64,000 nt of DNA from NCBI GenBank assembly GCA_026770705.1, contig JANJGN010000052.1:3100001-3164000 (forward strand), written 5' to 3'. How positions within the stretch are numbered: position 1 is the stretch's first letter; each line of letters starts with the position of its first letter. This stretch comes from Isurus oxyrinchus. Taxonomy: Eukaryota. Made by a program: the position numbers and the translations under genes. The notes beneath the pieces were generated by a model. That model did no database searches. It was given only the letters and a program-made list of their open reading frames with translations, and had not been told where the DNA came from. Below are positions 1,899 through 35,659 of the stretch, piece by piece.

Positions 1899-1938
1899 AT
1901 GATCGGGAAATCTTACTTCCTCCTGTCACTTATCCAAG
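1899..1938 (+). CDS. Gene A (Siglec-like activating receptor) signal-peptide exon MIGKSYFLLSLIQ
   Basis: Acceptor TTTCACAG ends 1858, ATG at 1899, hydrophobic core, phase-1 donor CAAG|GTAATA; splices in frame to V1 giving ...LLSLIQVGLSQEW. Confidence 0.85.
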
Positions 1939-8913: not shown

Positions 8914-9291
8914 TTGGACTGTCACAAGAGTGGAAAGGTGACAGTCCCCGAGAGGTGACAGCGCAGGAAGGTTCATGTGTACAGATTCCATGTCATTACA
9001 GTTACTCATCACATTTGGTAAAGAAAACACATGTCGGAATCTGGTATATGAGGAGGTACATACAGAACAAATGGTCTAAATGGTCTATAGCCTTTCACTC
9101 CAAGGATCACAGTCACGAGTTACCACGGTTCCACCATCGGACCCGGCTGTCTGGAGACCTGAAAGATGGCGACTGTTCCCTGATTATAAACAACATCAGA
9201 CGGGAAGATGAAGGACCTTATTTTTTCAGAATAGAATTTGACAATGGTCCGAGCCATAACTATTACCCTGAAACCCAGCTTCAGGTTTCTG
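8914..9291 (+). CDS. Gene A V-set exon V1 (Siglec-type)
   Basis: CCCCAG acceptor, G|GTAAGT donor, 378 nt, phase 1-1, open; Siglec hallmarks CVQIPC, GDCSL and YFFRIE (essential Arg). Confidence 0.92.
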
Positions 9292-9499
9292 GTAAGTGCT
9301 GTGTTATAATTACTCAACAATTCACATCCAACACTCAATGGGAAATAATAATGTTTGATTTGCTTGTTTTTTGGCCGTGTTAACCAGCGTCACTATTTTT
9401 AATGATTTGTCTATTTCTGCTCCCAGATCCATGAGCTTATTGTGTGTGATTGAATCCACATCATAGCTGTAACATAAACCGAGCTGAGGGGTGATGACA

Positions 9500-10520
9500 C
9501 ATCCCCCCTGAGTGAAGTGTCTCCTCCCCACTACACCTTCCACCCCTCACACTGTCCGTGTAAACCCCCGTCCCATCTCCAGCCTCTCTTTCCCCTCCAA
9601 AGTCCTTGAACGTGTTTCCATCTCCCGAATCTGTTCCCATCTTTCCCGGAACTCCATGTTTGAATCCCTCCAATCAGGTTCCCACCCCAGCCACTGTGCT
9701 GAAACAGCTCTTATCAAGGTCACAAATGGCATCCTGTGTGACTGTGACAAAGGTCAACTTTCCCTCCTCGTCCTTCTCGATCTGTCTGCAGCCTTTGACA
9801 CGCTCGACCACACCAACCTCCTCCAACACCTCTCCACTGTCGTCCAGCTGGGTGGGACTGCTCTCCCCTGGCTCCATTCTTATCCATCTCATCGTAGCCA
9901 GAGAATCACTTGCAATGGCTTTGCAGCATCATCTGAACAGTGTTAGTTTTCACCTGTCCACTGAGGATCCCCAGCTCTACCTCACCACCACCTCTCTCGA
10001 CTCCTCCACTGCTGTTAAATTATCAGGCTGCTTATCCGACATCCAGTACTGGATGGGCAGAAATTCCCTCCAATTAAATATTGGAAAGACTGAAGCCATT
10101 GTCTTCATTCCCCGCTCCAAACTCTGTTCCCTCGCTACCAACTCCATTCCTCTCCCTGACAGCTCTCTGAGATTGAAGCCAATCTGTTCACAGCTTTGTT
10201 GTCCCATTTGATCCTGAGATGAGCTTCCGGCCTCATATCTGCGCCCTCACTAACACCGTCTATTTCCACCTCCGTAACATCGCATGACTTCACCCTGTCT
10301 CAGCTCATCTGCTGCTGAAACCCTCATCCACGCCTTCATTACCTCCAGACTCGACTGTTCCAACACACGCTCTACACTCCATAAACTTGAGGCCATCCAA
10401 AACTGCTGACCACGTCCTTACTCACACCAAGTCCCGTTCCCTTATCACCCGCTCTGCTCGATGACCGAGACTGGCTCCTGGTCAAGCAAAATGTCAACGT
10501 CCAAATTTTCATCTTTGTTT
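9500..10520 (+). mobile_element. L2-clade LINE reverse transcriptase fragment
   Basis: Translations AETALIKVTN..., LLVLLDLSAAFDT, DIQYWM..N.LQLNIGKTE with frameshifts. Confidence 0.85.
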
Positions 10521-10539
10521 CCTCACTATCCCTGTAATC

Positions 10540-10965
10540 TTCTCGTCCTCCTCCAGTACCTACAACCATCCCATTCTCTGTAACCTCTTCAAGCCTCTAC
10601 CGCTTCCCTATATCTGTAAATTCATCCTGCCCAACAAACCTACCAATCTCTGCAACCTCCTCCAGCCACTACAAACCTCCCTATTTCTGTAACTTCCTCA
10701 TGCCCCTAAAAGCTTCCCTATCTCTGTAGCCTGCTCCAGTCCCGACAACTTTCCCTGCCCCTGTAACCTGCCCCAGTCACTACAACCCTCCCTACCTCTG
10801 CAAACTCCTCCAGACCCTACACTTTTCCAAGCTCTCTTAACTTTTCCAGCCCCTACAACCCTCCCTATCTCTGTAACTCCTCCAATCACTACAAACCTCG
10901 CTATCTCTGTAACCTCCTCCAGCCCCTACAACCCTCCCTATCTCTGTAACCTCCTCCAGACCCAC
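10540..10965 (-). repeat. Degenerate 37-bp minisatellite (CCTACAACCCTCCCTATCTCTGTAACCTCCTCCAGCC family)
   Basis: Reverse complement of the array at 35660-36440. Confidence 0.8.
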
Positions 10966-11429
10966 CAACCTTCAGAGGTCTCTGCGCTCCTCCAATTCCA
11001 GCCTCTTGACCATCCCCCGATCTCAACACTCTAACATTGGTGGCCATGCCTTCAGCTGCCTGGGGACCGAGCTCCGTAATACCCTCCCTTAAGCCCTCTC
11101 CATCCCTCACACTCACTCTCTCTCTCTCACTAACCATTTCATCCCTCTTTTAAGTTTCTCCATAACACCGACCTCTTCTGGCCAGCTGTCGCTAATATCT
11201 CCACATGTGTCTGGGTGACATACTTTGTTTTATGACGCTCCTGTGTAGCACCTTGGGGTGATTTGTCATGTTAAAGTTGTTGTGTAAATATAAGTTGTTG
11301 CCCTTTGACCCGCGACCCCAGCTCGAGTCTTATTTTTGAGGGAATGTACAACCTCCTTAGATTTCTGACCAAAATGTAATTTGATTATTTTTATTGAGCG
11401 AATGCCAAGCCCCGATACCGAGCGAGAGC

Positions 11430-11800
11430 CTCCTCATTTGCTGAGTTTAAGGTGATGAGTCAGCCCCTTAGTCCGTAGAGGGGATTCTCCTCGGTAATGT
11501 GCAGCCTTGTTTGTGTCTCTCCACAAGCGCATGAGGGATTTGTACAGAGGCTGCAGCGCTGGAGGGGGTCTGCACAGGGGTCCTGGCCTGTCCTGAGCTG
11601 GTTTTAGCAAGGACCACTCTGGCCTTGGCAGCTGAAAGCCAGCCATTGGACAGACAGGGCCTGTCACATGGAGCCTGTTAGTCACTCCCCCCCGTGTCTC
11701 CTGTGCTCGGATCCAGACCATGTTGGCTGGTGGATCTGGCTCAGGAAGGGTCCTCCCCATGGGACCCCCAGATGGAAGGTGGGTCGAGCGGGTCAGTCAC
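11430..11800 (-). mobile_element. LINE ORF2 C-terminal fragment (RTEX/I-like), repeated in each 2.3-kb unit
   Basis: GFQLPR..WSLL motif followed by a frameshifted Cys-rich tail. Confidence 0.5.
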
Positions 11801-11844
11801 TTGCATGTTTATTCTGCAGCTTTAATATTTTAAGAAGGTAAGAA

Positions 11845-12630
11845 TGTAGGAACATAAGAAATAGGGACAGGAGCAGGCCATTCGGCCCCTCCAGCCTGCC
11901 CTCGCTGATCTGGTTGTGGCCTTAACTCCATTTTCCTGCCTGTCCCCCAAACCCTTGACTCCCTTGTCGATCAAAAACCTGCCTCACTCAGCCTTGAGTC
12001 TATTCAATGGCCCAGCCTCCACTGCTCTCTGGGGAAGAGAATTCCACAGGCTAGCGCCCCTCTGAGAGAGGAAATTCCTCCTCATCTCAGTCTTAAATGG
12101 GAGAGTCCTCATTCCGAAACTGTGCTCCCTGGTTCTAGATTCCCCCACGAGGGGGAAACATCCTCCCAGCATCCACCCTGTCAAGCCCCCTCGGAATTGG
12201 ATATGTTTCAATAAGGTCACCCCTCATTCTTCTAAACTCCAATGGATACAGGCCCAACCTGCTCAACATTTCCTCACAGGACAAACCCTTTAATCCCAGG
12301 AATCAGCCCAGTGAAGCTTCTCTGAACTGCCTGTACACAATGATCCTGTTACAATCTCACTAACGCCCTGTGTAGCTGTTGCAAGACTTCCCTCCTTTTA
12401 TACTCCATCCCTTTGCAATAAAGGCCAACATTCCACTTGCCTTCCTCATTCCGTGGTGTTCCTGAATGCTGACTTTCTGTGATTCATGTACAAGGACACC
12501 CAGATCCCTCTGTACTGCATTCTGCAGCCTGTCTCCATTTAAATAATATCCTGTTTTTCTATTCTTCCTGCCAAAATAATTTGTTGCCATTCTCCTCAGT
12601 ATTGACCATCCCCCCAATTCAGCCTCATCT
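11845..12630 (-). mobile_element. CR1 LINE 3' fragment, repeated in each 2.3-kb unit
   Basis: QRDLGVLVH, MLAFIAKG, WNSLPQRAVEA motifs and a CR1-type tail. Confidence 0.9.
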
Positions 12631-12695
12631 GTAAATTTTGAGTCTAGTGGATCCACAAGCCATCCAGAGATAAATATTGAGATTTCTCTCCCCAG

Positions 12696-13064
12696 CTGAA
12701 CCCTCACAAGAGTGGAAAGGTGACACTCCACGAGAGGTGACAGCTCAGGAAGGTTCGTGTGTACAGATTCCATGTCATTACAGTTATCCATCGTGTCTGG
12801 AAAACCAACCGCGAGGTGGACTCTGGTTTAATAATGAGAAACAGATTCCCTGGGCTCCCATTGCCTTTCACTCCAAGGATCACAGTCACGAGTTACCACG
12901 GTTCCGCCATCGGACCCGGCTGTCTGGAGACCTGAAAGATGGCGACTGTTCCCTGATTATAAACAACATCAGACGGGAAGATGCAGGACCTTATTTTTTC
13001 AGAATAGAATTTGACAATGGTCCGAGCCATAACTATTACCCTGTAACCCAGCTTCACGTTTCTG
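12696..13064 (+). CDS. Gene A V-set exon V2
   Basis: AG/GT bounded, 369 nt, phase 1-1, open, YFFRIE retained. Confidence 0.9.
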
Positions 13065-15004
13065 GTAAGTGCTGTGTTATAATTACTCAACAATTCACAT
13101 TCAACACTCAATGGGAATTAACACAAACTGTGACGTTTACATATTAACACAAAACACAGTTTATTATAACACACTGTCTGATTCTCAATAACCTGGTGAT
13201 AGCTTCCAGTTCAGTCCTAAAGCAATGTCTAATACTCACTTTAATATCAATGATTAAATGTGTTGACTGTGTCTATCAATGTTATCAGGTTATCCACTCC
13301 CATCAATCTCTCAAATCCTGTCTTGAAGTCTGACATATCGACAGAAGAAAGATTTACATTTCTACAGCGCCTTTCACCACCCTAGACTTCCCACCCTAAA
13401 CCTCTCCCTCTCCCTCTTCCTCTCCCTCTCTCTCTCTCTCTCTCTCTGTCTCTTTCTCTCTGTCTCTCCATAACACCGACCTCTTCTGGTCAGCTGTCGC
13501 TAATATCTCCACATGTGTCTGGGTGACATACTTTGTTTTATGACGCTCCTGTGTAGCACCTTGAGGTGATTTGTCATGTTAAAGTTGTTGTGAAAATATA
13601 AGTTGTTGCCCTTTGACTCTCGACCCCAGATCGAGTCTTATTTTTGAGGGAATGTACAACCTCCTTAGATTTCTGACCAAAATGTCATTTGATTATTTTT
13701 ATTGAGCGAATGCCAAGCCCCGATACCCGAGCGAGAGCCTCCTCATTTGCTGAGTTTAGGGTGATGAGTCAGCCCCTTAGTCCGTAGAGGGGATTCTCCT
13801 CGGTAATGAGCAGCCTTGTTTGTGTCTCTCCACAAGCGCATGAGGGATTTGTACAGAGGCTGCAGCGCTGGAGGGGGTCTGCACAGGGGTCCTGGCCTGT
13901 CCTGAGCCGGTTTTAGCAAGGACAACTCTGGCCTTGGCAGCTGAAAGCCAGCCATTGGACAGACGGGGCCTGTCACAAGGAGCCTGTTAGTCACTCCCCC
14001 CCGTGTCTCCTGTGCTCGGATCCAGACCATGTTAGCTGGTGGATCTGGCTCAGGAAGGGTCCTCCCCATGGGACCCCCAGATGGAAGGTGGGTCGAGCGG
14101 GTCAGTCACTTGCATGTTTTTTCTGCAGCTTTAATATTTTAAGAAGGTAAGAATGTAGGAACATAAGAAATAGGGACAGGAGCAGGCCATTCGGCCCCTC
14201 CAGCCTGCTCTCACTGATCTGGTTGTGGCCTTAACTCCATTTTCCTGCCTGTCCCCCAAACCCTTGACTCTCTTGTCGATCAAAAACCTGCCTCACTCAG
14301 CCTTGAGTCTATTCAATGGCCCAGCCTCCACTGCTCTCTGGGGAAGAGAATTCCACAGGCTAGCGCCCCTCTGAGAGAGGAAATTCCTCCTCATCTCAGT
14401 CTTAAATGGGAGAGCCCTCATTCTGAAACTGTGCTCCCTGGTTCTAGATTCCCCCACGAGGGGGAAACATCCTCCCAGCATCCACCCTGTCAAGCCCCCT
14501 CGGAATTGGATATGTTTCAATAAGGTCACCCCTCATTCTTCTAAACTCCAATGGATACAGGCCCAACCTGCTCAACATTTCCTCACAGGACAAACCCTTT
14601 AATCCCAGGAATCAGCCCAGTGAAGCTTCTCTGAACTGCCTGTACACAATGATCCTGTTACAATCTCACTAACGCCCTGTGCAGCTGTTGCAAGACTTCC
14701 CTCCTTTTATACTCCATCCCTTTGCAATAAAGGCCAACATTCCACTTGCCTTCCTCATTCCGTGGTGTTCCTGAATGCTGACTTTCTGTGATTCATGTAC
14801 AAGGACACCCAGATCCCTCTGTACTGCATTCTGCAGCCTGTCTCCATTTAAATAATATCCTGTTTTTCTATTCTTCCTGCCAAAATAATTTGTTGCCATT
14901 CTCCTCAGTATTGACCATCCCCCCAATTCAGCCTCATCTGTAAATTTTGAGTCTAGTGGATCCACAAACCATCCAGAGATAAATATTGAGATTTCTCTCC
15001 CCAG

Positions 15005-15373
15005 TTGGACTGTCACAAGAGTGGAAAGGTGACACTCCACGAGAGGTGACAGCTCAGGAATGTTCGTGTGTACAGATTCCATGTCATTACAGTTATCCAT
15101 CGTGTCTGGAAAACCAACCGCGAGGTGGACTCTGGTTTAATAATGAGAAACAGATTCCCTGGGCTCCCATTGCCTTTCACTCCAAGGATCACAGTCACGA
15201 GTTACCACGGTTCCGCCATCGGACCCGGCTGTCTGGAGACCTGAAAGATGGCGACTGTTCCCTGATTATAAACAACATCAGACGGGAAGATGCAGGACCT
15301 TATTTTTTCAGAATAGAAATTGACAATGGTCCGAGCCATAACTATTACCCTGTAACCCAGCTTCACGTTTCTG
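15005..15373 (+). CDS. Gene A V-set exon V3
   Basis: AG/GT bounded, 369 nt, open; carries an extra Gly>Cys (QECSCV). Confidence 0.88.
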
Positions 15374-17309
15374 GTAAGTGCTGTGTTATAATTACTCAAC
15401 AATTCACATTCAACACTCAATGGGAATTAACACAAACTGTGACGTTTACATATTAACACAAAACACAGTTTATTATAACACACTGTCTGATTCTCAATAA
15501 CCTGGTGATAGCTTCCAGTTCAGTCCTAAAGCAATGTCTAATACTCACTTTAATATCAATGATTAAATGTGTTGACTGTGTCTATCAATGTTATCAGTTT
15601 ATCCACTCCCATCAATCTCTCAAATCCTGTCTTGAAGTCTGACATATCGACAGAAGAAAGATTTACATTTCTACAGCGCCTTTCACCACCCTAGACTTCC
15701 CACCCTAAACCTCTCCCTCTCCCTCTTCCTCTCCCTCTCTCTCTCTCTCTCTCTGTCTCTTTCTCTCTGTCTCTCCATAACACCGACCTCTTCTGGTCAG
15801 CTGTCGCTAATATCTACACGTGTCTGGGTGACATACTTTGTTTTATGACGCTCCTGTGTAGCACCTTGAGGTGATTTGTCATGTTAAAGTTGTTGTGAAA
15901 ATATAAGTTGTTGCCCTTTGACTCTCGACCCCAGATCGAGTCTTATTTTTGAGGGAATGTACAACCTCCTTAGATTTCTGACCAAAATGTCATTTGATTA
16001 TTTTTATTGAGCGAATGCCAAGTCCCAATACCGAGCGAGAGCCTCCTCATTTGCTGAGTTTAAGGTGATGAGTCAGCACCTTAGTCTGTAGAGGGGATTC
16101 TCCTCGGTAATGAGCAGCCTTGTTTGTGTCTCTCCACAAGCGCATGAGGGGTTTGTACAGAGGCTGCAGCGCTGGAGGGGGTCTGCACAGGGGTCCTGGC
16201 CTGTCCTGAGCCAGTTTTAGCAAGGACAACTCTGGCCTTGGCAGCTGAAAGCCAGCCATTGGACAGACGGGGCCTGTCACAAGGAGCCTGTTAGTCACTC
16301 CCCCCCCGTGTCTCCTGTGCTCGGATCCAGACCATGTTGGCTGGTGGATCTGGCTCAGGAAGGGTCCTCCCCATGGGACCCCCAGATGGAAGGTGGGTCG
16401 AGCGGGTCAGTCACTTGCATGTTTATTCTGCAGCTTTAATATTTTAAGAAGGTAAGAATGTAGGAACATAAGAAATAGGGACAGGAGCAGGCCATTCGGC
16501 CCCTCCAGCCTGCTCTCACTGATCTGGTTGTGGCCTTAACTCCATTTTCCTGCCTGTCCCCCAAACCCTTGACTCTCTTGTCGATCAAAAACCTGCCTCA
16601 CTCAGCCTTGAGTCTATTCAATGGCCCAGCCTCCACTGCTCTCTGGGGAAGAGAATTCCACAGGCTAGCGCCCCTCTGAGAGAGGAAATTCCTCCTCATC
16701 TCAGTCTTAAATGGGAGAGCCCTCATTCTGAAACTGTGCTCCCTGGTTCTAGATTCCCCCACGAGGGGGAAACATCCTCCCAGCATCCACCCTGTCAAGC
16801 CCCCTCGGAATCGGATATGTTTCAATAAGGTCACCCCTCATTCTTCTAAATTCCAATGGATACAGGCCCAACCTGCTCAACATTTCCTCACAGGACAAAC
16901 CCTTTAATCCCAGGAATCAGCCCAGTGAAGCTTCTCTGAACTGCCTGTACACAATGATCCTGTTACAATCTCACTAACGCCCTGTGCAGCTGTTGCAAGA
17001 CTTCCCTCCTTTTATACTCCATCCCTTTGCAATAAAGGCCAACATTCCACTTGCCTTCCTCATTCCGTGGTGTTCCTGAATGCTGACTTTCTGTGATTCA
17101 TGTACAAGGACACCCAGATCCCTCTGTACTGCATTCTGCAGCCTGTCTCCATTTAAATAATATCCTGTTTTTCTATTCTTCCTGCCAAAATAATTTGTTG
17201 CCATTCTCCTCAGTATTGACCATCCCCCCAATTCAGCCTCATCTGTAAATTTTGAGTCTAGTGGATCCACAAACCATCCAGAGATAAATATTGAGATTTC
17301 TCTCCCCAG

Positions 17310-17678
17310 TTGGACTGTCACAAGAGTGGAAAGGTGACACTCCACGAGAGGTGACAGCTCAGGAAGGTTCGTGTGTACAGATTCCATGTCATTACAGTTA
17401 TCCATCGTGTCTGGAAAACCAACCGCGAGGTGGACTCTGGTTTAATAATGAGAAACAGATTCCCTGGGCTCCCATTGCCTTTCACTCCAAGGATCACAGT
17501 CACGAGTTACCACGGTTCCGCCATCGGACCCGGCTGTCTGGAGACCTGAAAGATGGCGACTGTTCCCTGATTATAAACAACATCAGACGGGAAGATGCAG
17601 GACCTTATTTTTTCAGAATAGAAATTGACAATGGTCCGAGCCATAACTATTACCCTGTAACCCAGCTTCACGTTTCTG
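17310..17678 (+). CDS. Gene A V-set exon V4
   Basis: AG/GT bounded, 369 nt, open. Confidence 0.9.
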
Positions 17679-19613
17679 GTAAGTGCTGTGTTATAATTAC
17701 TCAACAATTCACATTCAACACTCAATGGGAATTAACACAAACTGTGACGTTTACATATTAACACAAAACACAGTTTATTATAACACACTGTCTGATTCTC
17801 AATAACCTGGTGATAGCTTCCAGTTCAGTCCTAAAGCAATGTCTAATACTCACTTTAATATCAATGATTAAATGTGTTGACTGTGTCTATCAATGTTATC
17901 AGTTTATCCACTCCCATCAATCTCTCAAATCCTGTCTTGAAGTCTGACATATCGACAGAAGAAAGATTTACATTTCTACAGCGCCTTTCACCACCCTAGA
18001 CTTCCCACCCTAAACCTCTCCCTCTCCCTCTTCCTCTCCCTCTCTCTCTCTCTCTCTCTGTCTCTTTCTCTCTGTCTCTCCATAACACCGACCTCTTCTG
18101 GTCAGCTGTCGCTAATATCTACACGTGTCTGGGTGACATACTTTGTTTTATGACGCTCCTGTGTAGCACCTTGAGGTGATTTGTCATGTTAAAGTTGTTG
18201 TGAAAATATAAGTTGTTGCCCTTTGACTCTCGACCCCAGATCGAGTCTTATTTTTGAGGGAATGTACAACCTCCTTAGATTTCTGACCAAAATGTCATTT
18301 GATTATTTTTATTGAGCGAATGCCAAGCCCCGATACCGAGCGAGAGCCTCCTCATTTGCTGAGTTTAGGGTGATGAGTCAGCCCCTTAGTCCGTAGAGGG
18401 GATTCTCCTCGGTAATGAGCAGCCTTGTTTGTGTCTCTCCACAAGCGCATGAGGGGTTTGTACAGAGGCTGCAGCGCTGGAGGGGGTCTGCACAGGGGTC
18501 CTGGCCTGTCCTGAGCCGGTTTTAGCAAGGACCACTCTGGCCTTGGCAGCTGAAAGCCAGCCATTGGACAGACGGGGCCTGTCACAAGGAGCCTGTTAGT
18601 CACTCCCCACCGTGTCTCCTGTGCTCGGATCCAGACCATGTTAGCTGGTGGATCTGGCTCAGGAAGGGTCCTCCCCATGGGACCCCCAGATGGAAGGTGG
18701 GTCGAGCGGGTCATTCACTTGCATGTTTATTCTGCAGCTTTAATATTTTAAGAAGGTAAGAATGTAGGAACATAAGAAATAGGGACAGGAGCAGGCCATT
18801 CGGCCCCTCCAGCCTGCTCTCACTGATCTGGTTGTGGCCTTAACTCCATTTTCCTGCCTGTCCCCCAAACCCTTGACTCTCTTGTCGATCAAAAACCTGC
18901 CTCACTCAGCCTTGAGTCTATTCAATGGCCCAGCCTCCACTGCTCTCTGGGGAAGAGAATTCCACAGGCTAGCGCCCCTCTGAGAGAGGAAATTCCTCCT
19001 CATCTCAGTCTTAAATGGGAGAGCCCTCATTCTGAAACTGTGCTCCCTGGTTCTAGATTCCCCCACGAGGGGGAAACATCCTCCCAGCATCCACCCTGTC
19101 AAGCCCCCTCGGAATCGGATATGTTTCAATAAGGTCACCCCTCATTCTTCTAAATTCCAATGGATACAGGCCCAACCTGCTCAACATTTCCTCACAGGAC
19201 AAACCCTTTAATCCCAGGAATCAGCCCAGTGAAGCTTCTCTGAACTGCCTGTACACAATGATCCTGTTACAATCTCACTAACGCCCTGTGTAGCTGTTGC
19301 AAGACTTCCCTCCTTTTATACTCCATCCCTTTGCAATAAAGGCCAACATTCCACTTGCCTTCCTCATTCCGTGTTGTTCCTGAATGCTGACTTTCTGTGA
19401 TTCATGTACCAGGACACCCAGATCCCTCTGTACTGCATACTGCAGCCTGTCACCATTTAAATTATATCCTGTTTTTCTATTCTTCCTGACAATATAATTT
19501 ATTGCCATTCTCCTCAGTATTGACCATCCCCCCAATTCAGCCTCATCTGTAAATATCGGGTTCAGTGGATCCACAAACCATTCAGAGTTAAATATTGAGA
19601 TTTCTCTCCCCAG

Positions 19614-19979
19614 CTGAACCCTCACAAGAGTGGAAAGGTGACACTCCACGAGAGGTGACAGTGCAGGAAGGTTCCTGTGTACAGATTCCATGTCATTATA
19701 GTTATCCATCATGTCTGGAAAACCAACCGCGACGTGGAGTCTGGCTTAATAATGAGGAATGGAGAACATCGTCTATAGCCTTTCACTCCAAGGATCACAG
19801 TCACGAGTTACCACGGTTCCACCATCGGACCCGGCTGTCTGGAGACCTGAAAGATGGCGACTGTTCCCTGATTATAAACAACATCACATGGGAAGATGCA
19901 GGACCTTATTTTTTCAGAATAGAATTTGACAATGGTCCGAGCCATAACTATTACCCTGTAACCCAGGTTCACGTTTCTG
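19614..19979 (+). CDS. Gene A V-set exon V5
   Basis: AG/GT bounded, 366 nt, open. Confidence 0.9.
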
Positions 19980-21915
19980 GTAAGTGCTGTGTTATAATTA
20001 CTCAACAATTCACATTCAACACTCAATGGGAATTAACACAAACTGTGACGTTTACATATTAACACAAAACACAGTTTATTATAACACACTGTCTGATTCT
20101 CAATAACCTGGTGATAGCTTCCAGTTCAGTCCTAAAGCAATGTCTAATACTCACTTTAATATCAATGATTAAATGTGTTGACTGTGTCTATCAATGTTAT
20201 CAGTTTATCCACTCCCATCAATCTCTCAAATCCTGTCTTGAAGTCTGACATATCGACAGAAGAAAGATTTACATTTCTACAGCGCCTTTCACCACCCTAG
20301 ACTTCCCACCCTAAACCTCTCCCTCTCCCTCTTCCTCTCCCTCTCTCTCTCTCTCTCTCTGTCTCTTTCTCTCTGTCTCTCCATAACACCGACCTCTTCT
20401 GGTCAGCTGTCGCTAATATCTACACGTGTCTGGGTGACATACTTTGTTTTATGACGCTCCTGTGTAGCACCTTGAGGTGATTTGTCATGTTAAAGTTGTT
20501 GTGAAAATATAAGTTGTTGCCCTTTGACTCTCGACCCCAGATCGAGTCTTATTTTTGAGGGAATGTACAACCTCCTTAGATTTCTGACCAAAATGTCATT
20601 TGATTATTTTTATTGAGCGAATGCCAAGTCCCAATACCGAGCGAGAGCCTCCTCATTTGCCGAGTTTAGGGTGATGAGTCAGCACCTTAGTCTGTAGAGG
20701 GGATTCTCCTCGGTAATGAGCAGCCTTGTTTGTGTCTCTCCACAAGCGCATGAGGGGTTTGTACAGAGGCTGCAGCGCTGGAGGGGGTCTGCACAGGGGT
20801 CCTGGCCTGTCCTGAGCCGGTTTTAGCAAGGACAACTCTGGCCTTGGCAGCTGAAAGCCAGCCATTGGACAGACGGGGCCTGTCACAAGGAGCCTGTTAG
20901 TCACTCCCCCCCCGTGTCTCCTGTGCTCGGATCCAGACCATGTTGGCTGGTGGATCTGGCTCAGGAAGGGTCCTCCCCATGGGACCCCCAGATGGAAAGT
21001 GGGTCGAGCGGGTCATTCACTTGCATGTTTATTCTGCAGCTTTAATATTTTAAGAAGGTAAGAATGTAGGAACATAAGAAATAGGGACAGGAGCAGGCCA
21101 TTCGGCCCCTCCAGCCTGCTCTCACTGATCTGGTTGTGGCCTTAACTCCATTTTCCTGCCTGTCCCCCAAACCCTTGACTCTCTTGTCGATCAAAAACCT
21201 GCCTCACTCAGCCTTGAGTCTATTCAATGGCCCAGCCTCCACTGCTCTCTGGGGAAGAGAATTCCACAGGCTAGCGCCCCTCTGAGAGAGGAAATTCCTC
21301 CTCATCTCAGTCTTAAATGGGAGAGCCCTCATTCTGAAACTGTGCTCCCTGGTTCTAGATTCCCCCACGAGGGGGAAACATCCTCCCAGCATCCACCCTG
21401 TCAAGCCCCCTCGGAATCGGATATGTTTCAATAAGGTCACCCCTCATTCTTCTAAACTCCAATGGATACAGGCCCAACCTGCTCAACATTTCCTCACAGG
21501 ACAAACCCTTTAATCCCAGGAATCAGCCCAGTGAAGCTTCTCTGAACTGCCTGTACACAATGATCCTGTTACAATCTCACTAACGCCCTGTGCAGCTGTT
21601 GCAAGACTTCCCTCCTTTTATACTCCATCCCTTTGCAATAAAGGCCAACATTCCACTTGCCTTCCTCATTCCGTGGTGTTCCTGAATGCTGACTTTCTGT
21701 GATTCATGTACCAGGACACCCAGATCCCTCTGTACTGCATACTGCAGCCTGTCACCATTTAAATTATATCCTGTTTTTCTATTCTTCCTGACAATATAAT
21801 TTATTGCCATTCTCCTCAGTATTGACCATCCCCCCAATTCAGCCTCATCTGTAAATATCGGGTTCAGTGGATCCACAAACCATTCAGAGTTAAATATTGA
21901 GATTTCTCTCCCCAG

Positions 21916-22281
21916 CTGAACCCTCACAAGAGTGGAAAGGTGACACTCCACGAGAGGTGACAGTGCAGGAAGGTTCCTGTGTACAGATTCCATGTCATTA
22001 TAGTTATCCATCATGTCTGGAAAACCAACCGCGACGTGGAGTCTGGCTTAATAATGAGGAATGGAGAACATCGTCTATAGCCTTTCACTCCAAGGATCAC
22101 AGTCACGAGTTACCACGGTTCCACCATCGGACCCGGCTGTCTGGAGACCTGAAAGATGGCGACTGTTCCCTGATTATAAACAACATCACATGGGAAGATG
22201 CAGGACCTTATTTTTTCAGAATAGAATTTGACAATGGTCCGAGCCATAACTATTACCCTGTAACCCAGGTTCACGTTTCTG
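21916..22281 (+). CDS. Gene A V-set exon V6
   Basis: AG/GT bounded, 366 nt, open; same protein sequence as V5. Confidence 0.9.
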
Positions 22282-23009
22282 GTAAGTGCTGTGTTATAAT
22301 TACTCAACAATTCACATTCAACACTCAATGGGAAACAACACAAACTGTGACGTTTACATATTAACACAAAACACAGCTTATTATAACACACTGTCTGATT
22401 CTCAATAATCCGGTGATAGCTTCCAGTTCACTCCTAAAGCAACCTCTAATACTCACTTTAATATCAATGATTAAATGTATTGACTGTGTCCATCAATGTT
22501 ATCAGGTTATCCACTCCCATCGATCTCTCTAATCCTGTCTCGAAGTCTGACTTAGCGACAGAAGAAAGATTCACAATTCTGTAGCACTTTTCACCACCTC
22601 AGCACGGACCAAATCACTTCACAGCCAAAGAGCTGATTCCTGAATTTTAGTTACTATTGTAATGTGGGAAACACAGCAACCAATTTGCGCACAGCAAGCT
22701 CCCACAAATTGCAAAGTAAAAAATGGCCTAGATCGCTGAGGGACTGATGGGTTAGTGCACTCCAAACTCTGGTCTGCTCCACCACCCTCACCCACTATTA
22801 TCAGTTCAAGTGTCTCGGAGTGAACGTGTATTAAGCTGAGAGACAGAAACACCAAAGTCTCAAAGCAGGAAATTCTCTCCTAATCATTGTAACCTCTCAG
22901 ATCTGATATCATCCTTGTAAAAGTGCTTTTTCTTGTGGGACTGTGATTTCTATTTGAACTGATGCTTCACGTTATATTTCTCTAAAAGGATCCATTCTCT
23001 GTGTGTTAG

Positions 23010-23306
23010 ATTTCACAGATAAACCCACGATATTCCCTGCTGAAATTATTGCAGGAAAGCGTGTGGATGTAAGCTGCACCTTCAACACAACGTGCAATGG
23101 AACAGCAGCACCTGTCTTAACCTGGGACACTCCCACTGACGTACCTGTATCAGTCTCAAACACTGTAACTCAGCATGGTGTCACTCTGACCTATACTTCT
23201 GTTCTGACCCTGATCCCATCACTCAAACACCACAGACACAATCTCAGCTGCAGAGTGAGATATCCATCTGTTTCATCGGAGCGGACCCTCGTACTAACTA
23301 TGCAAG
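23010..23306 (+). CDS. Gene A C2-set exon (Siglec domain-2 type)
   Basis: TTAG acceptor (alternative in-frame CAG 9 nt later), CAAG|GTAAGT donor, 297 nt; KPTIFP...SCTFNTTC...LTW...LSCRV with the extra BC-loop Cys. Confidence 0.92.
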
Positions 23307-23630
23307 GTAAGTACGGACACCCTTCATTCTACATCAGCACTCCCTCAGCGCTGACCCTCTGACAGTGCAGCCCGTTCTCAGTGTCCACATTCTCATGCCT
23401 CTCAAAGTGCTTCACAGTCGATAGAAGTTAACTGATCTTTATTTGATTGTTGCTGAATGAAGAGACAAGCTGTCTAAACTTTGCATCTCACACACATTAT
23501 TTTCCATGGCAACACCTCCTCCAATCAGAGACCACTTGCTGATTAACCAGCACTCTCTTCCCTTTAAATATAAATTGTTGTTCACTTTCTGTTGGTAAAC
23601 CTGCAATCTGTCTTGTTGAGTCCAGTCCTG

Positions 23631-23781
23631 ACATCTGAATATTACAATGAACAGAACAAGTTCCAACAATGAGCTGTGGTTGGTGATTCCTCACGTTACA
23701 TCCAGGGACACTGGAGACTATCAGTGTGCTCAGAGAATGAACATGGAGCAGTGGAGGGGTTCATAACCATCACTGTGGAAC
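23631..23781 (+). pseudogene. Decayed 3' half of a third-type C2 exon in gene A
   Basis: HLNITMNRTSSNNELWLVIPHVTSRDTGDYQC matches gene D repeats; 5' half missing; 1-nt deletion after the Cys codon; donor changed to GTTAGT. Confidence 0.85.
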
Positions 23782-24895
23782 GTTAGTTAAGACAAACTTC
23801 AACATCTCTCTCAGATTGAAACGCTACAAAAACACACATAAATATACAGCCTTAAATAGACACCTGCATACACACAATCCCACATCTATGAGCACACACA
23901 AAGACACACTCACAAACAAACACACTAGCACATACTCCCCTGTGGATTACCTGACCTCCCTCAGTGCTGCACCGGAGAGTTGACCTGGATTCTGGGATTT
24001 GTGTTCCCTTTCATATTTATGGAAGAATATGGAAATTGCAAAGTCTATTACAGACACTCAGATGCACAGAGATACTCACAGATACTCTCTGCCTCTCCAA
24101 CTCTCTATCCTACTTTAAGAACCTTCCTGAAATCTAACTCTTTGACCAGTCACCAGTCCCAATTCCTCCTTACGTGATTTTGTGTGAAATTTTGTTTGAG
24201 TATCTGAGAGTAAGAGGGAAGTGGAGAGGTTTAGGAAGGGAATTCCTGTTGCTGAAAAGCTTACATCAAGTTCTCAGCTTTCCAGTGCCCATTTTTCACA
24301 TGATGTCCATGTTCATAATGGGGATTGCCTATGTAAACATCACGCTGTAGTTACACTCTCCCACCAGTGGTAGCACGGTAACACTTAACCCTTGCATCTC
24401 CAAGCTTTTCAAGCAATTTCACTTCCTAATTTCCTACTATTCACCTCAACCATTCCCTGTGGGAGCGAGTTCCATATTCTCCCCTCTCTCTGGGTAAAGA
24501 TTGGAACTGTTTATTAAGCGGGGGGTGTAAGTCCGTGGGGGAGTCCATCCCGATACTGCCCGATTCGCACACACGGCTGAGATGGATTTTCACCCGGCAC
24601 TAAAGGTTTCCAGAATTTTCTACAGCACAATCCTGTACACAGCGATGGAGAGAAACATTGGACAGGGAGTCCAACAGCACAATGATCCATTCTCACCAAT
24701 GTTCCACGCTAAGGAGAAAGTTCCGATTGTCCACTCTTAGAGTGTTTACAATGAAAACATTCATTCCACATTGAATCCCAGTGGATGGGTCAATATTACA
24801 GCAAATGTTGCAGTGATATGAAGCTTGATTGTTCAGCCAGAGTGAGAGATTGAAAGCGGAGAGTCAGTGATGATTTCTTTCTGTGTGTTCTCTAG

Positions 24896-25035
24896 ACAGT
24901 GGAGGAGAGATTCTGCACGTGATCCTGATCCTGGGAATACGAGCTGTGATATTCCTTGTGGCTGTGGTTATCACTATCACTGGAGTCTGTGTCTGGGAGA
25001 GACAAACAGTGAAAGGAAGTCGACAGACTGTTTGA
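24896..25035 (+). CDS. Gene A terminal exon: TM with intramembrane Arg and short tail, (D)SGGEILHVILILGIRAVIFLVAVVITITGVCVWERQTVKGSRQTV*
   Basis: Polypyrimidine tract plus TAG acceptor; phase 1 matches the C2 donor; Arg codon CGA 24940-24942; TGA 25033-25035. Confidence 0.85.
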
Positions 25036-25419
25036 AGCTTTGTACAGCAACAATCTGGTCAGTCAGTGCGGACAAATAACGTGTGATGTTGTGTTAAGTT
25101 GTAATGAAACTGGTCAGTGTCCTGGTTATAATCATCTCCGTATCATCGAGTCATTCCAGCAATGGAGGAGGACATTTGGCCCATTGAGTCTATGCTGTCT
25201 CTCTGTAAAGGAATCCACTCAGTCCCATCCCCTGCTCTATCCCCGTATCCCTGCAAATTTATTTCCAAGTGTCCGTCCAATTTCCTTTTGAAATTGTTCA
25301 TCGAATAGGAATGAACAGAAATGTGACGTTGCTAAACTCTGTTCTCTGATTGGAATGTGCTTTCTGAATGCTGCACCTTTTTCATGCTGCGATAGATTGT
25401 AAGAAGCATTTGGCTTATG

Positions 25420-25425
25420 AATAAA
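25420..25425 (+). terminator. Candidate polyadenylation signal AATAAA of gene A
   Basis: Lies in a 3'UTR block homologous to the gene D 3'UTR. Confidence 0.55.
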
Positions 25426-25767
25426 ATTACATTGATTAACTCAAGTGATTAAAATGCTCAGCCTGTTCTGTAGATATTTAAAGATTAAAATTCTTGTTTT
25501 GCTGCAAAATACTTGGCTCAAAGACATAGCTTCCTGTTGTCACGTTTTCCAATCAGATGAATTCCTCTGTCCATCTTTATAATAGAAATTTCCAATGTAA
25601 ACATGTCACATTGTAACTGCACACTCTTGCCAGTGGGTGGTGTGATACCAAAGCTGTCTTGCTGCAGAGAAACAGCGAGAAATATTCCTGTTGTGTGCAT
25701 GAACTTCATGTTAGCATGAGACACAGGCATCAGATGAAATTTTGTGCTATTTGTACAATGTTCTTTA

Positions 25768-26286
25768 GACAGTGCAGCACTCCCTCAGATCAGACCCTCC
25801 GACAATGCAGCACTCCCTCAGTTCAAACCCTCTGACAGTGCAGCACTCCCTCAGTTCAGACCCTCCGACTGTGCAGCACTCCCTCAGTTCAAACCCTCCG
25901 ACAGTGCAGCACTCCCACAGTTCAGAACCTCCGACAGTGCAGCACTCCCTCAGTTCAGACCCTCTGACAGTGCAGCACTCTCTCAGTTCAGACCCTCTGA
26001 CAGTGCAGCACTTTCTCAGTTCAGACCCTCTGACAGTGGGGCACTCCCTCATTTCAGACCCTCCGACAGTGCAGCACTCCCTCAGTTCAGACCCTCCGAC
26101 AGTGCAGCACTCCTTCAGTTCAGACCCTCCGACAGTGCAGCACTCCCTCAGTTCAAACCATCCGACAGTGCAGCACTTCCTCAGTTCAAGCCCTCCGACA
26201 GTGTAGCTCTCCCTCAGTTCATACCCTCCGACAGTGCAGCACTCCCTCAGTACTGAACCTCCGACAGTGCCGCACTACCTCAGTAC
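25768..26286 (+). repeat. 33-bp minisatellite array
   Basis: About 15 units of GACAGTGCAGCACTCCCTCAGTTCAGACCCTCC. Confidence 0.95.
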
Positions 26287-32615: not shown

Positions 32616-33084
32616 CTGGAAAAGCAGGAGGACAATAGGTGAGAACATTCCGGAAAGAAAGAAGGCATCATTTCAATCAGGCGCGTCATTGGAAGGAGGA
32701 TGGCGCATTTCTATAGCGCCTTTCCCCTCCTCAGGATGGCCCAAAGTGTTCCACAGCTGAAGGAAGGACTTTTTCTGAAGTGAGCTCACCGCTGTAATGT
32801 AGGAAACGCAGCAGGCAATTCACGCACAGCAAGATCCCACAAACAGAAATGTGATAATGGCCCCGATTTTCAGTTTTTTACCAATGTCAGTTGAGGGATA
32901 AATGTTTGCCCCAGGAAAGCGGACATAACTCCACCCCATCCACCCCCCACCACCCCCTCCACACATACCCCCAACTCCTGACGCACTTCATCTAAATTGT
33001 GACCATGGACTCCTCTATATCCACCTGAGAGGGCAGATGTTGTCTCAGTTTAACATCTCATCTGAAAGACAGCGCCTTCAAAAG

Positions 33085-33345
33085 TGCAGCACCCCCTCAG
33101 TACTGACCGTCTGACAATGCAGCACCACTCAGTACTGACCCTCCAACAGTGCAGCACTCCCTCAGTACTGACCGTTTGACAATGCAGCACCCCCTCAGTA
33201 CTGACCCTCCGACTGTGCAGTCCCCCGCCGGTACTGACCCTCTGACAGTGCAGCACTCCAAGACTGACCGTCTGACAATGCAGCACCCCCTCAGTACTGA
33301 CCCTCCGACTGTCCTGCCCCCCCCGCCGGTACTGACCCTCCGACA
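33085..33345 (+). repeat. 33-bp minisatellite adjoining a SINE-like element (about 32700-33090)
   Basis: Same unit family as 25768-26286. Confidence 0.8.
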
Positions 33346-34882
33346 GCTCGGTAATTTCTCAATTATGCCTGGTGGTCCTTTTAACTCAGAGCTGAGAGTT
33401 GCAGAGAATCGAGCACACATCCTGAACTGACACTTGCAGTGCAAGTACTGGGAGCGCGCTGGTCATTATCATGCTGCTGTCTGTGGGATCTTACTGTGCG
33501 CCAATGGCTGATTCTTTTCCCACAGTACATCAGTGACCTCACATGAAAGAAAAAAAGCACTTGATTGTCTGCGAAACACTTTGGGACGTCCTGATGTGTT
33601 GGAAGGCGCTAGAGAAATGCAAGTCCTCTTTGTCTTTCACTCGATCCTCTAAGGTGTCTGTTGATTAACCAGCCTCTCGGTGTATGATGTAGGCCTGGTT
33701 ATAAACAGTTAGAAGGATCAAATATCAAAAATGCTTTGGCTGACAGTCAAACCGATTGTGCATTCGGAGAGATTAGATATGGTCTGCACACAATGACTCC
33801 AGTCTCTGGCACTGACTGCCGCCTGGGGTCTCCCTTCCACATAACACTCACAACTTGCATTTACACAGCGCCTCTGACATTGCAAAATGTCCCAGCCCAC
33901 GTTACCGGAGCGTAAATCAGAGAGAAGTCTAACACTGAGTCACATATGGAGATATTAGGGTTAGGTGACCAAAAGCTTGGTCAAAGATGTCAGTTTTTAA
34001 GGAGCGTCTTAAAGGAGAGAGAGAGAGAGAGGCAGAGAGGTTAAGGGAGGGTATTCCGGAGCTCAGGGCCCCAGGCAGCTGAAGGCACGGCCACCAATGG
34101 TGGAGTGATGGGAATCAGGGGGACCCGGGAGATGCAGTAATGTCAGAGATTTTGGAGGAACATCGGGACCGGAGGAGGTGTTCTCCTGCTCCATATCTCT
34201 CTCTCTCTTCCTCTCTTCCACTCCTCCTCTCCCTGTCTCTCTCTCTCCTACTCTTCCTCTCAATTGCCCTCTCTCCCAATCTTTCACTCCTCTCTCCCTT
34301 TTCCTGTCTCTCTCCCTCTCTCTCCCCTGTCTCCTTCTCCCACTCTGTATCTCTCCCTCTCTCTCACACTATTTTTGTACCTTTCGCTCACTCTGTAACT
34401 CTCCCTTTCCTGTTAATTTCTCTCTCTTGGACAATCTCTCTTCCCTTTTCACTTTCCCTCACTCCGCATCTCTTCTTTAATTTCTCCCTCTGTCACTCTC
34501 TCCCACCTATGTTCTTTCCCTTTCACCCCTCCCCGTCCCACTCTCTGTCTCTCTCTTCCAATCCCTCCCTCCCCCATTCCATCCCTCTCTCCGACTCTCG
34601 ACTCCCAGCCTCTCTTTAACCCACTCCCAGGCTGGATCAGTCTCCCTCTCACTGTTCCCGGCGTGGGTTACATTTAAAATTCCTGTGGGGATATGTTCAC
34701 TTCCTTGGAATTGTCTCTTCCCAGCTTTGCAAAAAAAGGGGGGGAGGGGGGCTCGATTTCAAACATGCCTCCTGAGTATAACCGAGACAGACTGCCACTG
34801 AAATCAGCTTGAAATCAGAAAACTTTCTGTGGAAGAAACGAGCAGGGAGAAACCTTAAAATAAGGAATGAATTTCCACCTAC

Positions 34883-34939: not shown

Positions 34940-35659
34940 CTGCAAAAAGAAAGAATTTATCAGGGAGAAAGTGAGAGGAGGATTGAGGGAGAGGGAGAGA
35001 GAGAGAGAGAGGTACAGGAGAGAGAGAGGGAGGAGGACAGACTTGCATTTCTCTAACGCCTTTCACCACATCCCAATGCATTTCACAGCCACTGAAGGAT
35101 GTTTTTGAAGTGCACTCACACTGTAGGAAATGTGGCAGCTGATTTGTGCACAGCAAGATCCCACAAATAGCAATGTGATCATGGCCTAGATCATCTGCTT
35201 TTTAGTGATGTTGGGTGAGGGATAAATATTGGTCCCAGGACACCGGGGAGAACTCCCCCTGCTCTTCCTCCAAATAGTGGCTGTGGGATCTTTCACACCC
35301 GCCCGAGAGGGCAGACGGGGGACTCAGTTTAATGTCTCATTCAACATTGTTGCGCTCCCTCAGTACTAACCCTTTGACACTGCAGCACTCCCTTAGTATT
35401 AACCCTTCGATAGTGCTGCGCTCCCTCAGTACTGTCCCTCCGTCAGTGCAGCTCTATTTCAGTACTAACTCTTCGACACAGCAGCACTCCCTCAGTACTG
35501 ACCTCCGACAGTATAGCACTCCCTCAGTACTGTCCCTCCAATAGTGCAACACTTCCACACTACTGACCCTCTGAGAGTGCAGCACTCCCTCAGCACGGAG
35601 CGTTGATCAACATTATGGGACTGAATTCCCTGGAGTGAGACTCAGACCAGTGATTTAGG

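Follow-up and report, generated by a model that had tools for sequence, protein, structure and literature searches.

A 64,000-nucleotide stretch of the genome of the shark Isurus oxyrinchus (NCBI GenBank assembly GCA_026770705.1, contig JANJGN010000052.1, positions 3,100,001 to 3,164,000 of the forward strand), called the window here and numbered from its first letter, carries on its plus strand six tandem exons for V-set domains (V1 to V6) between a leader exon and a C2-set exon. With good, though not full, confidence this is a real activating Siglec-like gene with an amplified lectin exon, whose V exons are joined one after another in the transcript, giving a receptor with several heads, probably in variable number. 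That this kind of gene is expressed in Isurus oxyrinchus and that its V exons are spliced together is directly observed in RNA contigs, while a messenger RNA (mRNA) from this locus may carry up to six V exons.

Structure of the gene

A degenerate form of the YFFRIE motif is matched six times on the plus strand (at 9219, 12992, 15301, 17606, 19907 and 22209) and once on the minus strand (at 62738), against 0.48 matches expected in shuffled sequence, and a V-set translation lies in open frame around every plus-strand site. The exons of the gene are the following (a slash marks a splice site; nt, nucleotides).

1899-1938, plus strand: leader (signal-peptide) exon, coding part, MIGKSYFLLSLIQ and the first base of the next codon, with a phase-1 donor G/GTAATA
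8914-9291, plus strand: V1, of the first-V type, 378 nt, phase 1-1, its C-C' loop long (MRRYIQNKWSKWS) and its BC loop free of cysteine
12696-13064, plus strand: V2, internal type, 369 nt, starting (A)EPSQEW, with a BC-loop cysteine and the C-C' loop EKQIPWAP
15005-15373, plus strand: V3, internal type, 369 nt, starting (V)GLSQEW, with an extra, unpaired-looking cysteine
17310-17678, plus strand: V4, internal type, 369 nt, one nucleotide apart from V3
19614-19979, plus strand: V5, internal type, 366 nt, with the C-C' loop EEWRTSS
21916-22281, plus strand: V6, internal type, 366 nt, the same exon as V5 (0/366 differences)
23010-23306, plus strand: C2-set exon of the Siglec domain-2 type, 297 nt, phase 1-1, with an extra cysteine (NTTC)
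23632-23780, plus strand: dead remnant of a second C2/I-set exon, 3' half only, with a frameshift near 23730
24896-25035, plus strand: transmembrane (TM) exon, coding for a membrane span that includes an arginine (ILHVILILGIRAVIFLV...) and a tail of 12 residues that lacks tyrosine motifs, then a stop codon

The six V exons are all a multiple of three in length, with two codon bases at the start and one at the end (phase 1-1), and no stop codon is found in any of them. Each has a pyrimidine tract and a CAG acceptor in the 5' flank (TTTCTCTCCCCAG) and a G/GTAAGT donor in the 3' flank (GTAAGTGC). The shared phase and splice sites make serial joining possible. Pattern matches and exon boundaries thus bear out what an earlier note on this DNA had claimed, namely six intact phase 1-1 V exons that all keep YFFRIE. 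Its single upstream leader is the exon at 1899-1938, and its single intact C2 exon downstream is that at 23010-23306, to which the TM exon at 24896-25035 can now be added. As a separate observation, V3 alone has GSC changed to CSC, which probably leaves an unpaired cysteine beside the interdomain one and could mean that this exon is slightly damaged.

The leader was matched once in six frames with the leader peptide of related genes (MIGKSYFLLSLLQ), and is the sole leader-like sequence within the window. Its likely acceptor lies at 1858/1859, a non-coding exon further upstream may have its end at 1825 (AG/GTGAGG), and about 7 kb separate it from V1. A leader adjoining V1 was considered and rejected, the 219 bp 5' of V1 holding no signal-peptide exon; these 219 bp are 93% identical to the upstream sequence of a related gene on the minus strand, described below as the inhibitory partner. 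At the other end, the TM exon encodes ...ILILGIRAVIFLV... and, before the stop codon, the tail ERQTVKGSRQTV; it is 78-79% identical in amino acids to the tails of the catshark models P0006 and P0161. It is followed by a 3' untranslated region with AATAAA at 25420. By arithmetic on the exon lengths, full inclusion of all exons would give a product of about 897 residues.

Evidence from RNA

Four sequencing runs, all of them short contigs, were aligned to positions 19500-25450 (5951 letters), with splice-joint sides of 11-29 letters and a likeness threshold of 93%. Two of the runs, X2 and X3 (labelled 'RNA?'), come from the same organism as the DNA run X1, and X18 comes from another (organism B). 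In X2 and X3, GT..AG joints are found from the 3' end of a V exon to C2 (19978 to 23009) and from C2 to TM (23304 to 24894). Neither joint occurs in X1, so that X2 and X3 hold spliced RNA. X18 yielded no splice joint, and one of its contigs continues out of V6 into the adjoining intron.

Moreover, X2 and X3 hold a contig on the start of V5 that is preceded by TTCACGTTTCT, a sequence which is the 3' end of V2-V6 only, the corresponding letters being TTCAGG in V1 and TTCATG in the V exon of the partner gene. The joined V-to-V string was not found in the genome window. This contig is a V-to-V splice into an exon of the AEPSQ type (V2, V5 or V6). Of the junctions that the earlier note had proposed to count, V-to-V and V-to-C2 joints are both present in X2 and X3. 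Furthermore, RNA contigs cover V5, the letters AAACAGATTCCC, specific to V2-V4, are transcribed, and sequences of the V2-V4 type and of the V5/V6 type both occur in RNA. The TM exon is covered with 0-2 differences, and the contigs extend to at least 25450.

The points at which the contigs begin give a hint of the order of splicing. The V-to-V contig begins right after the sole site that tells V2-V4 from V5/V6 at the 3' end, and the V-to-C2 contig reaches 19-24 letters into the V exon, beyond the V-type site that lies 12 letters from the exon end. Because k-mer assembly would break contigs in this way if two V types fed a junction, this hints at ordered serial splicing, with two upstream V types entering the V-to-V junction and one entering C2.

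With respect to the remnant at 23632-23780, which derives from the repeated C2-type exon, lies in the intron between C2 and TM and is matched in two frames by the catshark model P0006 (tblastn), the C2-to-TM splice seen in RNA bypasses it. The RNA contigs found there have an extra T after 23728 and run on into exons of the minus-strand gene, so that the high RNA depth at these positions comes from intact paralogous exons.

The tandem array

The internal V exons lie in a tandem array, which is set apart from V1 by two other repeats.

11094-22598, plus strand: five tandemly arrayed units, each 2282-2310 bp long, with V2-V6
9512-9946, plus strand: fragment of the reverse transcriptase of a long interspersed nuclear element (LINE) in the V1-V2 intron (Pfam RVT_1, E 2.4e-8)
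10547-10994: 37-nt tandem repeats, a satellite (Tandem Repeats Finder)

Each unit consists of about 1.6 kb of intron sequence and about 0.74 kb with one V exon, and the copy of this latter part around V1 is older, with 88% identity. The units are 95.0%-99.0% identical, with 23-114 mismatches per pair and no two of them the same. Neighbours are closest (U3-U4 99.0%, U5-U6 98.5%), and the lowest value is that of the end units, U2-U6 (95.0%). Since all the units differ and their likeness falls with distance, this pattern of divergence reads as that of a real evolving tandem array and not as an assembly copy artefact. Open reading frames (ORFs) of 78-144 amino acids are also conserved in antisense orientation in every unit (12360-12791 and 11984-12220, minus strand), one of them overlapping the start of the V exon. 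A Pfam scan of those in the 1.6-kb intron part gave no match; presumably they resemble LINE tail sequence.

Siglec family membership

The V exons score as V-set domains in Pfam with E values of 1e-12 to 1e-13, and V1, V2 and V5 exceed the cut-off of both the V-set and the Ig_CD22 models. The top 17 distinct sequence matches in the PDB are all Siglecs, including Siglec-5, -7, -8, CD33, -10, MAG and sialoadhesin (E 1e-15 to 3e-12), and the closest solved structures are those of Siglec-5/-7/-8/CD33, with E about 1e-15. In these alignments YFFRIE falls on YFFRVE of Siglec-5 and YFFRME of Siglec-7. The arginine of this motif, in strand F, is an essential residue of Siglecs (PMC13358205, PMC7250851) and is kept throughout V1-V6 as well as in the partner V.

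The cysteines also follow the Siglec pattern, strands B and E having one each, strand F lacking any, and the V domain carrying one more: all V exons read GSC..IPC...GDCSL, and YFFRIE contains none. Domain 2 of MAG and of CD33 is matched by the C2 exon, whose NTTC falls on the second, interdomain cysteine of CD33 (SWAC) and MAG (PDNC). From these sequence features, the gene is assigned to the Siglec family and sialic-acid binding is predicted. It departs from the standard architecture of one N-terminal V-set domain followed by C2-sets (PMC13358205), six V exons standing before the single C2 exon. As to its kind, the membrane span contains a basic residue, and the tail is short and lacks an immunoreceptor tyrosine-based inhibitory motif (ITIM). 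An arginine in the membrane span together with a short tail is the signature of the activating paired receptors Siglec-14 and -16 (PMC13358205), and by analogy the membrane-span arginine would point to signalling through a DAP12-like adaptor.

V types and signs of gene conversion

Comparison of the exons bears out the three V types that had been proposed: V1; V2-V4, with 97-99% amino acid identity; and V5 and V6, identical in amino acids. They differ mainly in the C-C' loop. From strand C'' to G the six V exons show no synonymous difference among themselves, and from C'' to F the partner V is also almost invariant, this region being practically constant across all seven V exons. The C''-to-G region is either homogenised or strongly conserved. 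From the BC loop to C', V1 is very unlike the other V exons, at synonymous and non-synonymous sites alike.

The C-C' patch of V5 and V6 is letter for letter that of the partner V on the minus strand, and that of V2-V4 is different. V4 and V5 differ at 28/366 positions in the exon against 26/1935 in the rest of the unit (p=6e-10), an excess due to the imported C-C' patch. Conversely, V5 and V6 show 0/366 exon differences against 34/1915 in the rest of the unit (p=0.004), so that the exon has been conserved or homogenised while the units diverged. The whole-exon ratio of non-synonymous to synonymous substitution (dN/dS) among V exons is 0.4-1.1 and does not clearly point to positive selection. 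In alignment, the variable patch corresponds to the C-C' loop of Siglec-7, which is implicated in the ligand specificity of that receptor (PMC7250851), and it is reasonable to suppose that the three V types may represent three specificities. Gene conversion between activating and inhibitory partners is known for Siglec-5/-14 and Siglec-11/-16 (PMC4042635, PMC5701461).

The inhibitory partner gene

The related gene lies further along the window, on the opposite strand.

49962-63048, minus strand: inhibitory partner gene, with V, C2, repeated C2/I-set, TM and tail exons
62683-63048, minus strand: partner V exon, source or recipient of the C-C' patch common to V5/V6
about 61831-61496, minus strand: partner C2 exon
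53743-61309, minus strand: seven to nine near-identical C2/I-set exons, about 1.0-1.3 kb apart
52158-52060, minus strand: partner TM exon, matching the ITIM-bearing great white model P0165
50431-50147, minus strand: partner tail exon, matching the same ITIM-bearing model P0165

The partner V is 86% identical to V2-V6 and lacks the BC-loop cysteine, and the partner C2 is 91% identical to the C2 of the activating gene. A related inhibitory partner, a matching V-set and signs of gene conversion, as in paired receptors, are thus found together. RNA contigs also show repeat-to-repeat and repeat-to-TM splices of the partner gene or of its paralogues (loose ends ATGCACCA and AGAGACTCCAG).

The BC-loop cysteine

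In canonical Siglecs, a cysteine of the V domain is bonded to one in domain 2. The internal V exons have a further cysteine in the BC loop (PSC), present in V2-V6 and not in V1. Among the V domains counted it occurs in 32/44 that follow another V, in 1/27 first ones and in 1/108 single ones (Fisher p=3e-9, relatedness uncorrected). Each internal V would probably contribute, to judge from this distribution, an acceptor cysteine to the preceding V and a donor cysteine to the next domain. The count of cysteines is even for V1 with any number of internal V domains and C2, and odd if an internal V directly follows the leader. With its cysteines paired in this way, an internal V module could be gained or lost while every cysteine kept a partner.

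In the AlphaFold model of basking shark P0002, a natural V1-V2 protein, the domains are predicted with confidence. The model's two-domain match of lowest root-mean-square deviation is CD33 V-C2 (7.3 A, TM-score 0.52 by target), and pIgR is among the fold matches. The model lends slight weight to an end-to-end arrangement of V domains.

Sharks and rays

V2 was searched against 1.8 billion representative proteins, where the multi-stretch matches were shark and ray proteins, all RefSeq/GenBank models, and V domains in the relatives were counted with a profile built from the V exons of the window. A protein search with V5 alone, within a length window, gave three short proteins only and no transcript-derived fragments. 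The RefSeq models of sharks and rays contain two to six Siglec-type V domains, as follows.

Cloudy catshark, P0161 ('polymeric immunoglobulin receptor-like'): five contiguous V domains and a partial one, C2, and the same Arg-TM tail
Small-spotted catshark, P0160 ('Siglec-12 isoform X1'): four V domains
Mustelus, great white, basking shark, whale shark, bamboo sharks and a sawshark: two or three V domains
Stingray and devil ray: four V domains

Three isoforms of the small-spotted catshark are identical from the last V onward and use different V exons, with four, three and three V domains, and represent annotated alternative V usage in one gene. The suggestion that symmetric phases allow any subset of V exons fits these isoforms.

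A tree built from V domains places V1 with domain 1 of the basking shark and great white models (support 100/93) and V2-V6 inside the clade of internal V domains, where sequences cluster by species. The four ray domains are one-to-one orthologous between devil ray and stingray, so that the multi-V layout is old and was maintained. The five-fold amplification of the internal V at this locus is local and recent. V2 is 94% identical in amino acids to domain 2 of the great white P0165, and the closest proteins are those of the great white and basking shark, its relatives. In the literature library searched, no paper was found that deals with multi-V Siglecs in cartilaginous fishes; the layout is absent from textbooks and already predicted by automatic annotation in other sharks and rays.

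Proposed origin and function

The ancestral layout, common to great white and basking shark, would have comprised a leader, a first V, one internal V, C2 and TM. The 2.3-kb unit with the internal V exon would then have been amplified to five copies by unequal crossing-over, and the spliceosome could join the copies in series, all being phase 1-1 exons with the same strong splice sites. The predicted product has two to six lectin heads of the sialic-acid type, a single C2 domain, an arginine-bearing membrane span and a short tail, and may signal via a DAP12-like adaptor as Siglec-14 and -16 do. The BC-loop cysteine of each internal V is probably paired with the interdomain cysteine of the preceding V. 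Finally, the V5/V6 type would copy the loop of the neighbouring inhibitory gene, like paired receptors matched by gene conversion.

A more ambitious form of this scheme, which is given a low probability, is that of combinatorial multi-headed activating Siglecs in sharks, produced by exon amplification and variable inclusion of the phase-symmetric lectin exons. Their heads would be gene-converted from different inhibitory Siglecs, several of which a receptor could shadow against pathogens that mimic sialic acid, and the cysteine pair would keep any subset of V domains bonded. If this were true, the locus would be a case of splicing-based diversification of an innate lectin receptor.

Alternative explanations

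Several observations weigh against a serially spliced, multi-headed receptor from this locus. No read or contig crosses more than one junction. The C2 contig differs from the window at 23148, 23234 and 23241 (as it does in the DNA run X1), and the sole leader-to-V contig reads LLQ where the leader of the gene reads LIQ; the junction contigs may stem from near-identical paralogues. No use of V1 and no leader-to-V1 splice (a 7-kb intron) was seen in the RNA contigs. Furthermore, the copy number of the array is that of the assembly, all the runs being contigs, and the RefSeq models are automatic predictions, among which P0161 contains intron-derived sequence. This last point was noted at 24552-24926, in the intron just 5' of the TM exon, which is translated within P0161 with 46% identity over 125 amino acids, so that P0161 includes a retained or mis-called intron.

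Among other explanations, the one that keeps most weight, although rather unlikely, is that the extra units are young, largely silent duplicates, the functional product consisting of V1, one internal V and C2 while the remaining copies, not yet old enough to have decayed, are mostly skipped. The identity of the V5 and V6 exons, with introns 1.8% apart (p=0.004), speaks against it, as does the fact that five copies keep their splice sites, frame, structural cysteines and arginine, although the units are only 1-5% diverged and the dN/dS of their V exons is not distinctive. The models of lamniform relatives, with two V domains, would agree with such a product, but those of catsharks have four to six. 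As for RNA, no transcript with more than two V exons is seen among the short contigs; yet sequence of both internal types is transcribed, and the start of the V-to-V contig suggests, on an indirect reading, that two upstream V types enter an AEPSQ-type V.

It is improbable that the assembly is over-expanded, that is, that a repeat was multiplied in assembly and the real haplotype contains fewer 2.3-kb units. The repeat is indeed tandem and highly similar, and with runs made of contigs depth is no guide to copy number, but the mismatches in every pair of units and the drop of similarity along the array are not those of copied sequence, at least two internal V types are transcribed, and three to six V domains are predicted from the assemblies of other species. 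Least probable of all is the earlier note's cassette, in which the leader would be joined to a single V exon out of the six, and this to C2, per transcript or per cell, giving single-headed receptors of three alternative specificities: symmetric phases permit it, the three V types have different C-C' loops and the catshark isoforms of a single gene differ in their V exons, but V exons are joined to each other in RNA, the V-to-C2 contig runs past the V-type site and so hints that one V type precedes C2, all related models string their V domains serially, with three or four kept in the catshark isoforms, and the extra cysteine would be unpaired in an internal V placed directly after the leader. 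Serial splicing of the V exons of a real, amplified gene is accordingly preferred; the other reading of the earlier note, a hexavalent receptor with every V exon included, would be its fullest form.

Other features of the window

At 39575-39871 on the minus strand lies a distant V-set-like exon with about 30% identity to the Siglec V exons, probably part of another immunoglobulin superfamily gene near a hepcidin-like ORF. Arrays of a 33-nt repeat (CAGTGCAGCACTCCCTCAGTACTGACCCTC...) occur on both strands, at 907-1078, 25768-26284, 33083-33346, 35355-35593, 43115-43302 and 50583-51071. Its contig depth is very high in all runs, organism B included, so that it is a genome-wide satellite or a repeat from the tail of a short interspersed nuclear element. 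In addition, about 2 kb of CT/CA-rich tandem repeats of 70-74 nt, with strong negative GC skew, lie at 40995-42912, and runs of N are found within 44788-60261.

Comparison with known systems

Siglec-12 (Siglec-XII in humans) had been named as the known exception to the single V-set domain. It keeps that place in the mammalian literature (PMC6288428, PMC13358205), but not when the shark and ray models of RefSeq are taken into account, with their two to six V domains. Like the shark gene, it has more than one N-terminal V-set, namely two, followed by C2 (PMC6288428). It differs in that number, which may be up to six in the shark, and in having an inhibitory tail instead of a membrane span with arginine and a short tail. 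Moreover, no tandem exon array or variation of V type is reported for it; it is a CD33-related mammalian Siglec, and orthology with the shark gene is only conjectural.

The mammalian pairs Siglec-5/-14 and Siglec-11/-16 resemble the present one in having an activating member with a basic membrane residue, a short tail and a V domain kept similar by gene conversion (PMC4042635, PMC5701461, PMC13358205). Each of their members has one V, whereas the activating gene of the shark has six of three types. The inhibitory partner of the shark is also unlike those of mammals, a single V exon standing before a long series of C2 repeats. A likeness of architecture only is found with pIgR, after which the catshark model was named by NCBI: it too carries serial V-like immunoglobulin domains on one chain, but binds polymeric immunoglobulin and lacks both the cysteine pattern of Siglecs and the arginine for sialic acid.

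Also among the nearest known systems are the elasmobranch models (P0161, P0160, P0165, basking shark XP_078389734 and Atlantic stingray XP_059815055), which have in common the leader MIGKSYFLLSLLQ, the first V and the C2. Their internal V domains start AEPSQEW or VGLSQEW and have the BC-loop cysteine, as V2-V6 do, and P0161 and P0006 share the Arg-TM tail. The lamniform models have two V domains, whereas the locus described here has five internal copies from local amplification of the 2.3-kb unit.

The picture of Siglecs as one-headed receptors, with the two-headed Siglec-12 as an oddity, would be extended to the oldest jawed vertebrates by a many-headed shark and ray family. Such a family, which would have been kept for long in rays and be actively amplifying in sharks, offers a natural test of how valency and the combination of heads affect glycan recognition. 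Paired activating and inhibitory Siglecs homogenised by gene conversion would be older than mammals. Finally, the locus provides a case of exon-array evolution under a structural rule, that of one donor and one acceptor cysteine per module.

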